This document shows positions 3,394-8,418 of a stretch of DNA of 64,000 nt, piece after piece. A program made the translations under genes and the position numbers. Source of the stretch: Adineta vaga (Eukaryota; Animalia; Rotifera); contig CP075496.1 in assembly GCA_021613535.1 (NCBI GenBank), positions 4,092,001 through 4,156,000 on the forward strand, read 5' to 3'. Under the pieces are notes generated by a model. It did no database searches. It was not told where the DNA came from and saw only the letters and a list, made by a program, of their open reading frames with translations. Position 1 is the stretch's first letter, and every line of letters starts with the position of its first letter.

Positions 3394-5647
3394 CGAGTAT
3401 AAAGCGACATAGAAAAATACGTTTATATTATAATTTGTTAGCAGTACGATGAAGTAGGAAAGAAAAAAAAACGACACCCTCGATTGTGCGTAATATTTTT
3501 TTCTTTCTTTCTCTACACATTCATTCCTTGCGCATGCAGCCAACGGCGAATATCAGTATTTTGTAGTTAGAACAAAAAGAGCAGAGGGAGAGAGTAGACT
3601 ACTTGTTTTATATTTATGTCAATGATTAGCTACAACAAAAAACAAAAGCGATCAAATAAAATGTCAGAAAATCAATTTAAAATAGAATACAAATTGATTG
3701 ATATATGAATGAGATAGATAGATATGAGAACTCAACCATGTTTTATAATTAGATTATGCTAAATGAAAATCAAGTTTCATCATAATATTGTTCTGATCAG
3801 AAATCTGAATTTCTCCACAACCAAGTCTTCCTATTTAGTTTGTGATTTTTTTCTAGAAAAATGCCAAGCACTCGCCTGTATCGTCGATGATTTCATAGCT
3901 TAAGATCTAGTATTTCAATCGTTACTATTAAATTTTAACATTTTATGAAAAACTATCATTATCGTTACTTGTGCGAATGATTTTGTAATCAATTTTGTAT
4001 CTCTTGTGATATATATGAGAAGCACGGTATTTGAAACACATTTAGTTTACATTCACTGCGAAAGGACTCAATCCTGTAACATTTCATTTAAAAGTAAAAT
4101 TCTTGATCATGTTTCTCTGAATATGTTCGTTTACGACTATGTTGTTTTTTACCTGAGTATGATGTTGATTAATCTACTTTTCAATAACTAATAATCAAAC
4201 TATATCATCGATTATTTACAATGACTGATTTAACTCTATGATTATCGTCGATAATTATTGTAATATGTGAATAATTTAGTTTCAATGAATTATCTAGATA
4301 CGAAAAGCGTAAAACAAGATTTAAACAATTCTGTTTTCAAAGGTTTTTCTAATCAATCACAATGTATATTATTACATTTTGTCAAAATACCGAAGCTGAA
4401 TAGATATTCCTTCAATGGATCAGTAAATGATGTGACGAACAAGATTCGAATAAATCTATATTTGAAACAATTCGTGATTTTATTCATTCTTTAAAAAATA
4501 ATATCATTCTCATGGAAGAACATGTAAATAAGGTTGGCAAACGGGAACAACGATTCAAACTGAAAGAGGTGCACTGTACACTACAACAACATCTGTTGTA
4601 ACAATTATTCGAGAACTTTCCTTTTAGGTGAGCACAAGAGTTACCTCATTTTTATATATCAAGTAATATCAAATTGCTTTTCTTCAGCACTGACAATGGT
4701 TTCGTTTCACTTTTTATTTGAAATTTCTGCTTTTGCAATAACAGGCTGAAAGTAAAAATGACAGTGTTGTCACATGTCATAATCAGAAGTTCAGAAAGAT
4801 TTTTGCCAGTTGATTTTTATCGGTTAAAATGATTCTTCTTGCTCTCAATTGAATCATTTATTCATTCAAACTAACATGTCAATGCTTTTCTTTTTCCTCC
4901 TTTTGCCGAAGCTTTCACCAGTTTCTATTCCTACGTACGATCTGAATAAATGATCACGAATTATATCAAAAAGATATCTTTTATCATAATTTGTTTAAAT
5001 AAGTTTTATGAATCCAGTACTATATCAACTCTTACAAATGATATTCTACTTTGTTATTCCATATCCATAGAGTCTAGATCTCAGTATGTTCTCACATAAT
5101 CCTAACTTATGATTTGTTTTTTATGTAGAACTAGATGAATGCTCACATATTAACGTGTAAAAGGCTGACCTTGTTATTATGAAAATATACGTAAGCAATT
5201 TTAATATAATACTTCGAGTTATTTACATGTGTGCATTTTCAACGCAAAACTCCAATATCATGATAGATCATTGAGATATTAAAAGATTATATATTTCTTT
5301 GTTTTTGGTAATGATTCATTCCGAGGCAAATATATATTTCACAATCAATGCTAAATAGCATCATTGTATTCGGATGAATCATATATCTCAAGGAGTAAAA
5401 AATATCTTTATCTTCATTATAGCAATACCTAGCTCGAGAAATATCCTACCAATCAACGTTGTTTGTTGATTTCATTCGTTTAAAGAAAATGATTCATTTA
5501 TTTTCTTATCACTGAATACTTTTTTCTTTTTAACTAAGTACATGAACATAATACGATATCATTGCTATATACATGTTTGCTTTCCTTTCTGCACATGAGT
5601 CAAACACATACATTCACAAAAGAATAAATATTGACAAGAAGAGAAAA

Positions 5648-5683
5648 TATAAAAACAAGACCATTAAACATTTTTCTTCATTT
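5648..5683 (+). promoter_or_regulatory. Serpin core promoter: TATA box plus initiator
   Basis: TATAAAAA at 5648-5655 and TCATTT (TCAKTY initiator) at 5678-5683. The A(+1) is 32 nt after the TATA start and 33 nt before the ATG. Confidence 0.5.
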
Positions 5684-5712
5684 CTCCTTCTTCTACTCTT
5701 CTGACGCGATAC

Positions 5713-7917
5713 ATGGCTTCATCATCATCATCATCCACCGCAGTTGGTTTCGAATACTTTGGACAAAAACTTTATTCGATTGTTAGTAACAATCAAAATA
5801 ATCAAAATGTATTTCTATCACCAGCAAGTATTGCTCTTGCTATGTCTATGTGTACGGTTGGTGCTCGAAAAGAAACATTGAATCAAATGTTACACGCACT
5901 CGAAGTATCAACAACAGCTGAATTAACTAAAACAGCTGAACAAGTAATGCGTGTTTTTACAATAGCTGATCAAGATAAACAAGTACAATTGAAATTAGCT
6001 AATCGTCTCTATGCACAAAAAGCATATAAACTTCAAGAAGATTATTTACAACTTGTTCAAAATTCATTTTCAGCTGATATTAAATTAGCTGATTTTGCTA
6101 ATGAAAGTGCTCAAGTTGTTCAAACGATCAATGTATGGGTAGAAGAACAAACAAATAAATTAATTAAAAATTTACTTTCGCCAAATGATGTTAACAGAGA
6201 CACACGATTGATTATAATTAATTGTATCTATTTCAAAGTAAATTTTTGACTTCGCTTTTTATTCGATTAAAATTCTTGTATATTGAAACTGTGTAGGGTA
6301 CATGGATCAAACAATTCGATGAAAATTCTACAGATGAACAAGCTGATTTCCATGAAGCTAATGGAAAAGTTTCTAAAGTTAAATTAATGTATAAGAAAGA
6401 GAAATATGCTTATGTGGAAAATAGCAAGTTACATGTTCAAGTTGCACATCTTCCATATAAAAGTGATAGTCCAGATGTTCAATTTGTATTTACAGTTATT
6501 TTACCAAATCAAGATGTTTCTTTATCTGATGTGGAAAAACAATTAACATCAAAACCAGAACTATTACAATCATTATTGGATCATCGAGAAGCAACAACAC
6601 AAGAACTTTTATTATATCTTCCGAAATTTAAAATGGAAGCTTCATTTACATTAAATGATGTACTTCAACAACTTGGTATGCGAAATGCGTTTGATCCTAG
6701 TAGCGCTGATTTTACTGGTATTGTTAGTAAAGAAGATGATGCTGCTGGCCTTTATATTAGCAAAGTAGATTATTTATTGATAATGAAAAAGGTTATTGAA
6801 TATAAAATTTCAGGTCATTCATAAAGCATTCATCGATGTTAACGAACAAGGTAAGCATATTGAATCAATATGATAGAGAAAAGTTAGGATTTGTTCATAT
6901 TTACAACTGAATTGTAAAGGTTCTGAAGCTGCAGCAACAGCACTAGTAAAAAAGGCATGACGTGCGTGTAAATCGACGGCAAAAAATGATCCTATTGAAT
7001 TCAAAGCAAATCGACCATTTTTGTTTTGTATTCAAGAAAAACAACAAAATATCTTGATATTCATTGGCAAATTTTGCTAAATGACAAAGAATAGATAATA
7101 AATGTTGAGTTTTTAAATCTTTCTTTATTTTCCAAGGAACTCGAGCAGCAGCTGCTACTGTTGTAAGCTGTAAAAGAAAACGTCGCACGTTATCAAAGAC
7201 CGGACCAATTGAATTTAAGATCGATCGTCCGTTTCTATTTCTGATTCGAGAATATCATCAGAATATCATTTTATTTTCCGGAAGATTTCTAACTCCTACA
7301 AATGCTTAATATTCTTTTCATAATTGAAAAATGATGATAATAAAATTTCTTTCGATCATTAATCACTTATAATTTCTTTGCATCTAGTATGAATACGATA
7401 TTGAAAACATCCCTATAAATTGCTTTTCAATTTCTACTTCGAACAGGTTCAGAAGCTGCTGCTGCTACAGCTGTTATTATGATGAGAAAAAGCTGTATAG
7501 TCCGTCGAAATCCTGACCCAATCATTTTCAAAGCCGACCGACCATTTTTATTCTATATACGCGAGACTCGACAAAATCTCACTCTATTTAATGGCAAATT
7601 TTTAACATGTCCAAAATAAACATTTTCGTACGAACATTTTTCAATCTCTACACTAACCATTATCAAATAAAAATATAGAATTTTTCATCAAGATTCGAGA
7701 ATCAATTATTTTCATTTTTTTTCCATTTTCTCGTTTAGGATCAGAAGCAGCAGCAGCTACTGCAGTGATTATGACACGTTGTTGTGCATCATTTTCGCCT
7801 AAACCACCTCCTATTGAATTTAAAGCTGATCGACCATTTTTATTCTTCATTCGTGAAAATAAACGAAATATCAATTTATTCACTGGAAAATTTGCTTCTC
7901 CACCAGCAACAGCATAA
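5713..7917 (+). CDS. Intracellular serpin with four alternative reactive-centre-loop (RCL) terminal exons
   Basis: Shared exons 5713-6237, 6297-6764 and 6814-6850 give [34 protein letters not shown] and [14 protein letters not shown] phase-1 donor at 6851 is followed by four phase-1 acceptors, each opening a G(S/T)(E/R)AAA hinge exon. No signal peptide. Confidence 0.95.
6920..7080 (+). pseudogene. Serpin RCL cassette exon A (in-frame TGA at P2)
   Basis: [55 protein letters not shown] at 6958-6960; AATAAA at 7097. Confidence 0.7.
7137..7309 (+). CDS. Serpin RCL cassette exon B (polybasic KRKRR loop)
   Basis: [57 protein letters not shown]. Pyrimidine tract and AG at 7135-7136; AATAAA at 7339. 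Confidence 0.9.
7447..7619 (+). CDS. Serpin RCL cassette exon C (predicted P2-P1-P1' = R-K-S)
   Basis: [59 protein letters not shown] at 7445-7446; AATAAA overlaps the stop (7615-7620). Confidence 0.9.
7739..7917 (+). CDS. Serpin RCL cassette exon D (predicted P2-P1-P1' = R-C-C)
   Basis: [61 protein letters not shown] at 7737-7738; AATAAA at 7916. Confidence 0.9.
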
Positions 7918-8094
7918 TAAAACATATTTCGAACTTTTGACTGCTATTCCTCCTAAGATATAACTTTTAGAAATAAATACTAGAATACATACATTCTTCA
8001 CATTCAGATTTCAATATCAAAAGTCACTATCAACAATTCGCTAAGCTCTTAACCGAATTACATAAGACAGATTTGATTAAGAATGGCATCAAAC

Positions 8095-8418
8095 TTATTC
8101 GAGAATAATATTTGTATTTCGATCAGCAAGATGATTTGTATGATTCAAAATAATATTTAAAATTACAACAAGAACAATGACAACAAGAAGAAGAATTCCA
8201 ATAGCAATATACTTCAATTTATTCAATGTTTCATTTCGTTGCATATCTTTTCGATAATCCATCACACCAATTCCGAAAGCTTGATTCTTATGTAATAATA
8301 AATCACTTCGATCTAAAAGAATATTTAATTGTTCATTTCGTTCGAGACTCGAATTAATTGCTGTTTGAAGTTGTTGTTCAGTTTGATTAGCTAATTCATG
8401 TAATTTCTTCAATTCCAT
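8095..8418 (-). CDS. Small R-SNARE (synaptobrevin/VAMP-like)
   Basis: Coiled coil SLERNEQLNILLDRSDLL with a zero-layer Arg, followed by a C-terminal transmembrane helix. The true start may be MDDKPIAL near 8486 if there is a 1-nt deletion near 8433. Confidence 0.7.
   Translation of the reverse strand: MELKKLHELANQTEQQLQTAINSSLERNEQLNILLDRSDLLLHKNQAFGIGVMDYRKDMQRNETLNKLKYIAIGILLLVVIVLVVILNIILNHTNHLADRNTNIILE

Follow-up and report, generated by a model that had tools for sequence, protein, structure and literature searches.

The 64,000-nucleotide (nt) stretch of the Adineta vaga genome analyzed here (the window; contig CP075496.1, forward strand) contains the serpin gene I4U23_018383, which lies on the plus strand at 5713-7917 and which we read and translated piece by piece. 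Its shared body is encoded by three exons (Table 1). Exon 1 corresponds to positions 6 to 163 of the Pfam Serpin family (PF00079; E = 9e-42) and exon 2 to positions 164 to 307 (E = 1e-32), and the short exon 3 stops within the codon for the P15 Gly of the reactive-center hinge, at a donor reading G/GTAAGC (the slash marks the splice site). RNA contigs extend the 5' untranslated region upstream to at least 5599-5619. Neither a signal peptide nor any other hydrophobic signal sequence was found in the translated start of exon 1.

Four tandem exons, here called cassettes A to D, follow this donor. Each is preceded by an AG, each is in phase 1, and each completes the interrupted Gly codon. Every cassette encodes a G(S/T)(E/R)AAA.. 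hinge, a divergent loop, and a PI(E/I)FK.(D/N)RPFLF...GKF tail with its own stop, and an AATAAA lies 0 to 30 nt after each stop (at 7097, 7339, 7615, and 7916), a motif that is common in this sequence (2.2 per kb). Individually, the cassettes match the last ~50 positions of Pfam Serpin (about 320 to 370) above the gathering score, with E values of 5e-10 to 9e-12 (for cassette A, the piece 3' of an internal stop was scored, E = 6e-9), such that exons 1 and 2 and each cassette are consecutive parts of a domain that covers the whole protein. In a repeat scan, the four align in register with 61 to 82% DNA identity in their coding parts, and the spacers between them do not align. From base composition, the chance of an open frame of 57 codons at 30% G+C is calculated to be ~0.01.

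TABLE 1 Exons, introns, and cassettes of I4U23_018383 in window coordinates, with the residues flanking the putative cleavage site as counted from P15
Feature	Position	Strand	Description	P2-P1 / P1'
Exon 1, coding part	5713..6237	+	175 codons; translation, RNA contigs	
Intron 1	6238-6296	+	59 nt, GT..AG	
Exon 2	6297..6764	+	156 codons; translation, RNA joints on both sides	
Intron 2	6765-6813	+	49 nt, GT..AG	
Exon 3	6814..6850	+	37 nt; ends VNEQ plus first base of P15 Gly codon	
Cassette A	6920..7080	+	Loop KKA*RACKS, in-frame TGA 6958-6960; stop 7078-7080; no junction seen	(stop/R)-R / A
Cassette B	7137..7309	+	Hinge GTRAAAAT, multibasic loop, open frame; stop 7307-7309; no junction in four runs	R-K / R (within KRKRR)
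Cassette C	7447..7619	+	Stop 7617-7619; AATAAA at 7615; spliced in RNA; GenBank UJR30869.1 (P0274)	R-K / S
Cassette D	7739..7917	+	Stop 7915-7917; AATAAA at 7916 and 7972; GenBank UJR30868.1 (P0273)	R-C / C

The array had been recognized from the letters of the window alone (the original prediction), as a serpin body ending mid-codon in the P15 Gly and followed by four phase-1 exons with their own stops and polyadenylation [poly(A)] signals. Reading and translation, Pfam, and the repeat scan show the coordinates and anatomy given there to be correct. One correction concerns cassette A, whose loop contains an in-frame TGA that the original prediction wrote as an asterisk and passed over without comment and that is CGA in the other allele.

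Transcripts were assessed with Logan contigs of four sequencing runs from three studies, aligned to 5500-8100; such contigs drop rare variants, so that the absence of a joint from them is weak evidence. The runs had been taken as RNA by guesswork, and because introns 1 and 2 are missing from their contigs and the depth in intron 1 is zero, all four are spliced RNA and not DNA. The constitutive joints 6237 to 6297 and 6764 to 6814, both GT..AG, are present in every run. A GT..AG joint leads from the donor of exon 3 to cassette C (6850 to 7447) in three runs (X1, X2, and X6) from two studies and another to cassette D (6850 to 7739) in all four runs and all three studies (both joints are listed at 6848 with a "cut +2," which is the donor at 6850). 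Both C and D are spliced in, each as an alternative to the other, which contradicts the possibility that only one junction is ever used. In none of the four runs does a joint leave any cassette, as is predicted for terminal exons and as had been proposed from the lack of any need for a donor after them.

Contigs containing cassette C end at 7628 in two studies, just past the AATAAA at 7615, and those containing cassette D end at about 7980, which is compatible with separate poly(A) sites for C and D, with the proviso that contigs cannot prove transcript ends. The depth of the junction contigs is higher for D than for C, by about 2-4 to 1, as judged by depths that are not reliable measures of abundance. 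A contig of run X5 (from 2013) begins exactly at the ATG at 5713, with 23 unmatched bases upstream and another 10 downstream of 7902; these end bases are probably library adaptors, the alternative being a trans-spliced leader.

GenBank holds three products under the locus tag, all of which start with exactly the residues of exons 1 to 3, confirming the rotifer lineage that had been suggested from the sequence. UJR30868.1 (402 residues; P0273) consists exactly of exons 1 to 3 plus cassette D, and UJR30869.1 (400 residues; P0274) of exons 1 to 3 plus cassette C; these two database proteins served for all full-length isoform comparisons, the exons being searched singly. In the third product (P0190, 350 residues), the first 343 residues are those of exons 1 to 3, after which the model reads into the intron 3' of exon 3 and stops. 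Cassettes A and B of A. vaga are unannotated. The array had been described as invisible in the list of open reading frames and as likely to be mis-annotated by gene predictors, which is half right: it applies to A and B and to the mis-modelled orthologues in other species, not to C and D, which were already GenBank isoforms. Public models chain two to four cassettes into single proteins of 518 and 494 residues (A. steineri), 468 residues (A. ricciae), and 473 residues (Rotaria socialis); they cannot be right, given that each cassette ends at a stop in its own frame and that exon 3 is joined to single cassettes in A. vaga RNA.

The expected contrast between divergent bait loops and a conserved scaffold is borne out within A. 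vaga: between cassettes, the loops are 0 to 28% identical and the scaffolds 57 to 76% identical. The proportion of synonymous differences (pS) among these cassettes is 0.45 to 0.9, near saturation, and the ratio of the proportion of nonsynonymous differences to it (pN/pS) is 0.25 to 0.43 in the scaffold and 0.6 to 1.3 in the loop. The hinge consensus of inhibitory serpins (P15 Gly, P14 Ser/Thr, small residues at P12 to P9) is present in B, C, and D as G(S/T)(E/R)AAAAT; the hinge of cassette A, GSEAAAT, deviates at P9 (Thr). By DNA, the closest relative of cassette A is D (79% over 85 nt).

Arrays of the same kind occur in other bdelloids. We fetched and scanned the orthologous loci of A. ricciae (two assemblies), A. 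steineri, R. socialis, and R. magnacalcarata, making five loci in four species. Four of the five (all but that of A. steineri) are closely followed by a synaptobrevin-like gene on the opposite strand, and because this same neighbor is matched in the window by an open reading frame at 8095-8418 (-), we regard the array loci as orthologous. The frame that served as this synteny marker encodes 107 residues with a C-terminal hydrophobic anchor and is arranged tail to tail with the serpin. Both A. ricciae assemblies contain three cassettes, of types B [G(C/Y)KRKRRA], C [M(L)K(S/G)CAVRR], and D (LMDRCCAS). Five are present in A. steineri, beginning with one of the B type (SLKRKRRAIS) and including one whose tail is broken. 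The two Rotaria species, R. socialis and R. magnacalcarata, each have four: B (LTKRRRLAS), a C type, D (IMMRCCASI), and a fourth. The B type, (K/T)KR(K/R)RR, is the first cassette in all four of these species, and its acceptor reads TT(T/C)CAAG/G across five species. Within Adineta, the ratio of nonsynonymous to synonymous divergence (dN/dS) of orthologous cassettes is 0.19 to 0.34 for B, 0.14 to 0.37 for C, and 0.21 to 0.26 for D. The array probably predates the Adineta/Rotaria split, with cassettes gained and lost by tandem duplication.

At the A. steineri locus (L025, cassettes at 5513-6852), the five scaffolds are nearly identical (DHPFLFMIRECRQNITLFSGKYLSPP) and the loops differ, which suggests either gene conversion or a recent duplication after which the loops diverged rapidly; the cassette with the disrupted tail is the one at 6151. 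An apparent second exon 3 in this species (L025:5088-5350, two almost identical copies 222 nt apart) is most likely a scaffolding-gap artefact, since the second copy begins at an N. A gene of the ERG4/ERG24 family lies near this array, at L025:9055-10383. A profile-free search with exon 1 led to a serpin of Didymodactylos carnosus (P0002), which as a query in turn retrieved P0190. This relative was considered as an array gene and rejected, being intronless with one C terminus.

Elsewhere in A. vaga, four other serpin genes have the same hinge intron position and a single last exon, and no arrays were found at the loci scanned in the 100.8-Mb, six-contig assembly, with about 1.5 kb of flank on each side. 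About 17 kb past the end of the window, at contig positions 4173282-4174415 (-), lies an intronless, full-length serpin open reading frame of 429 residues (Pfam E = 7e-86), which is only about 28% identical to exon 1 of I4U23_018383.

The D isoform (P0273) matches solved serpin structures from end to end. Its nearest natural relatives among these are SERPINB1 (4ga7, E = 5e-66), antithrombin, and SERPINB3/4, and Drosophila Spn42Da (4p0f, E = 2.5e-58) matches as well. With their hinge consensus intact, the products appear to be standard inhibitory serpins, and they are probably intracellular because none of the orthologues of I4U23_018383 has a signal peptide.

Taken as a whole, the locus is best read as one apparently intracellular inhibitory serpin gene in which one donor serves several tandem 3'-terminal loop exons, a reading to which we assign a probability of roughly 0.8 (0.82). 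Transcription would pass through the whole array, after which the donor at 6850 would pair with one acceptor and all sequence upstream of that acceptor would be removed as intron. The chosen exon would bring the hinge, the loop, the C-terminal strands, the stop, and the poly(A) signal, such that the choice of acceptor would be coupled to the choice of poly(A) site and would yield inhibitors with one scaffold and different protease specificities. The mode would be that of alternative last exons, selected by 3' splice site and poly(A) site, and not that of classical mutually exclusive internal exons.

Several observations weigh against this reading, at least in its full four-cassette form. Of the junctions foreseen in the original prediction, those to C and D were found, and none from 6850 to A (6920) or B (7137) appears in the contigs of the four runs and three studies. 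In two runs, low-depth contigs that continue through the spacers cover A and B, a pattern consistent with unspliced RNA or with the annotated read-through product. In the reference haplotype, the frame of cassette A is interrupted by a stop; its acceptor is weak, with a poor pyrimidine tract, and the loci of A. ricciae, A. steineri, R. socialis, and R. magnacalcarata yielded no A-type cassette. A tree of 23 cassettes groups the B-type sequences in one clade (93/95) and leaves A unplaced on a long branch; it draws on about 59 columns, and gene conversion confounds it. That every loop has basic residues at P2/P1 follows only from counting 15 residues from P15, and the P1 assignments and the protease targets that they imply are putative. 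Finally, the protein has neither a signal peptide nor an endoplasmic reticulum-retention tail, so that it is not obvious where in the cell the convertase-type loop of B would encounter its target.

A rival explanation is a two-cassette gene, with C and D as its sole functional cassettes and with A and B as never-spliced relics of old duplications. The missing A and B junctions agree with it, as do the GenBank models, which hold only C and D, and the TGA and weak acceptor of cassette A. A protein search with cassette B alone likewise returned no short peptide spanning exon 3 and B, a result made weak by the length window and the word index of the search. Cassette B itself argues the other way: in five species its frame is open, the KR(K/R)RR motif and the acceptor are retained, and it keeps its place as first cassette, and its dN/dS within Adineta is the same as that of the expressed cassettes. 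An unused exon would not outlast near-saturated synonymous divergence, and the stop in cassette A is specific to one allele. We therefore consider it unlikely that both A and B are relics; for cassette A alone, the odds of this are about even.

The claim of four alternative inhibitors is partly supported: junctions in RNA prove C and D, B is conserved and so probably functional, and the status of A is doubtful. From its conserved acceptor (TTCCAAG/G in A. vaga, followed by the loop ...CKRKRR...), its first position, and a dN/dS like those of C and D in Adineta, cassette B appears to be maintained as a coding exon and is probably used in conditions or cells that were not sampled. Cassette A may be a young, fast-evolving, A. 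vaga-specific copy, nearest to D, that is being lost or is rarely used.

Allelic differences are distributed over much of the gene. The RNA contigs depart from the window at 14 sites in 5709-6689 (13 within exons 1 and 2) and at several more in the cassettes. At one of these, T6958C, the TGA of cassette A becomes CGA (Arg) in about half of the contig depth, indicating that the stop is specific to one allele. Both allelic differences in cassette C alter residues of the loop (I to V and V to A). In cassette B, one allele replaces Cys with Tyr just before KRKRR, and the two A. ricciae copies differ likewise. Cassette D ends in two consecutive TAA stops (7915-7920), the first of which is TCA (Ser) in an allele present in two runs, adding one residue to the protein.

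The remaining alternatives fare far worse. If separate serpin genes or haplotypes had been collapsed or stacked into one locus by the assembly, the array would be an artefact, and bdelloid genomes do hold diverged homologous and paralogous copies; the apparent exon 3 duplication in A. steineri does abut an N gap. However, RNA contigs at 6967-7169, 7140-7261, 7232-7474, and 7445-7766 overlap end to end from A through B and C to D, so that the contiguity of the array is confirmed independently and an assembly collapse is disposed of. Fifteen public runs from eight studies contain the stretch or part of it, the same order of cassettes is repeated at five loci in four further species, and the cassettes differ by 18 to 39% in DNA and hence are not haplotypes; we regard an artefact as extremely improbable. 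Equally remote is a single long protein with several loops encoded by consecutive internal exons, as the chained public models of A. steineri, A. ricciae, and R. socialis would have it, given the in-frame stop that ends every cassette, the cryptic donors inside the RPFLF region that such models need, and RNA joints that link exon 3 straight to C or D.

The choice among acceptors in the multi-cassette gene may itself be regulated. The acceptors in use, those of C and D, are the most distant from the donor (596 and 888 nt), and the constitutive introns of the gene are only 49 and 59 nt long. Because these distant acceptors are used while the good acceptor of B is skipped in a gene with short introns, the pattern suggests that proximal acceptors are under regulated repression. 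An inverted-repeat scan of 6765-8000 returned AT-rich matches and the GCT/GCA runs of the hinges, and no convincing docking/selector pairings of the kind found in Dscam or PGRP-LC.

The hinge Ala codons form a GCT run in cassette C (7450-7466) and are GCA rich in B (7144-7160) and D (7746-7762), as a result of which the hinge RNA of C is 88 to 94% complementary to those of B and D over 17 nt. In Rotaria, too, C-type cassettes show the GCT bias and B-type cassettes the GCAGCAGCTGCT. This complementarity could reflect RNA pairing that affects acceptor choice, or mere codon usage.

Serpin genes with loop cassettes are established in insects (Manduca serpin-1, Drosophila Spn42Da, Anopheles SRPN10, and PpSerpin-1), nematodes, and urochordates (PMC4006314, PMC10513286). 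A close parallel is Spn42Da (Spn4) of Drosophila melanogaster, in which a shared core is likewise followed by four alternative terminal loop exons; one of its isoforms carries a multibasic, furin-type loop (RRKR), comparable to that of rotifer cassette B, and some isoforms are without a signal peptide (PMC4006314). The multibasic loop of Spn42Da-A inhibits furin-like convertases (PMC4006314). The two genes differ in that an alternative 5' exon adds a signal peptide in the fly and none was seen in the rotifer gene, in that insect cassettes start after the hinge whereas rotifer cassettes include it, and in that the rotifer B isoform is absent from the RNA contigs.

Vertebrate clade B (ov-)serpins, such as SERPINB1, resemble the rotifer products in having an inhibitory hinge and no signal peptide, and SERPINB1 carries a reactive-site Cys, like rotifer loop D. 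In contrast to the rotifer gene, their loops were diversified by gene duplication and not by cassette splicing. The intracellular Anopheles SRPN10 and Caenorhabditis elegans srp-7 reportedly have three or four alternative 3' loop exons, and SRPN10 isoforms take their names from loops, KRAL and RCM among them, that are reminiscent of the basic and R-C loops of the rotifer.

With insect genes of the serpin-1 type (Manduca serpin-1 and Pteromalus PpSerpin-1), the rotifer gene shares tandem C-terminal exons in phase 1 with one "extra G," rapid gain and loss of exons, and a variable loop on a conserved scaffold; the insect arrays are larger, with up to 21 cassettes (PMC10513286). In 84% of the C-terminally alternatively spliced serpin genes of insects, the splice lies one base past the end of the hinge (GSEAAAVT) (PMC10513286). 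The rotifer splice shares the phase and lies in the codon for the P15 Gly, eight codons upstream of the insect position. An ancestral array common to rotifers and insects is not supported by this comparison. Because the rotifer intron is at the start of the hinge and the insect intron is at its end, an independent, convergent origin is probably the simpler reading. Exon 9 of Manduca serpin-1 is also reported to be internal and not terminal.

A broader scenario, to which we give slightly less than an even chance, is that bdelloids evolved loop switching independently of arthropods and nematodes and have kept at least three loop types since before the Adineta/Rotaria split, namely, the multibasic KR(K/R)RR, (K/R)S.(C/M)..VRR, and RCCAS. 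The first cassette, B, would then encode a conditional isoform (made, for example, in eggs, during desiccation or recovery, or upon infection), and the proximal acceptors would be actively repressed in favor of those 600 to 900 nt away.

No description of a cassette serpin from a rotifer or any other spiralian was found in searches of full-text papers, which miss most subscription journals, in keeping with the original prediction, which knew of none from rotifers. The array at I4U23_018383 extends the mechanism of one serpin scaffold with many loops to rotifers (Gnathifera/Spiralia), a new phylum, and the different position of the splice points to convergent evolution of the same solution. It also flags errors in public annotations, in which two A. 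vaga cassettes are missing and the genes of A. steineri, A. ricciae, and R. socialis are modelled with serial loops. The allele-specific stop in cassette A provides a small worked case of one exon allele decaying in an asexual diploid. The finding raises the questions of when the multibasic isoform is made, how a genome with short introns skips good proximal acceptors, and which proteases are controlled by the conserved RCCAS loop in animals that survive desiccation and radiation.

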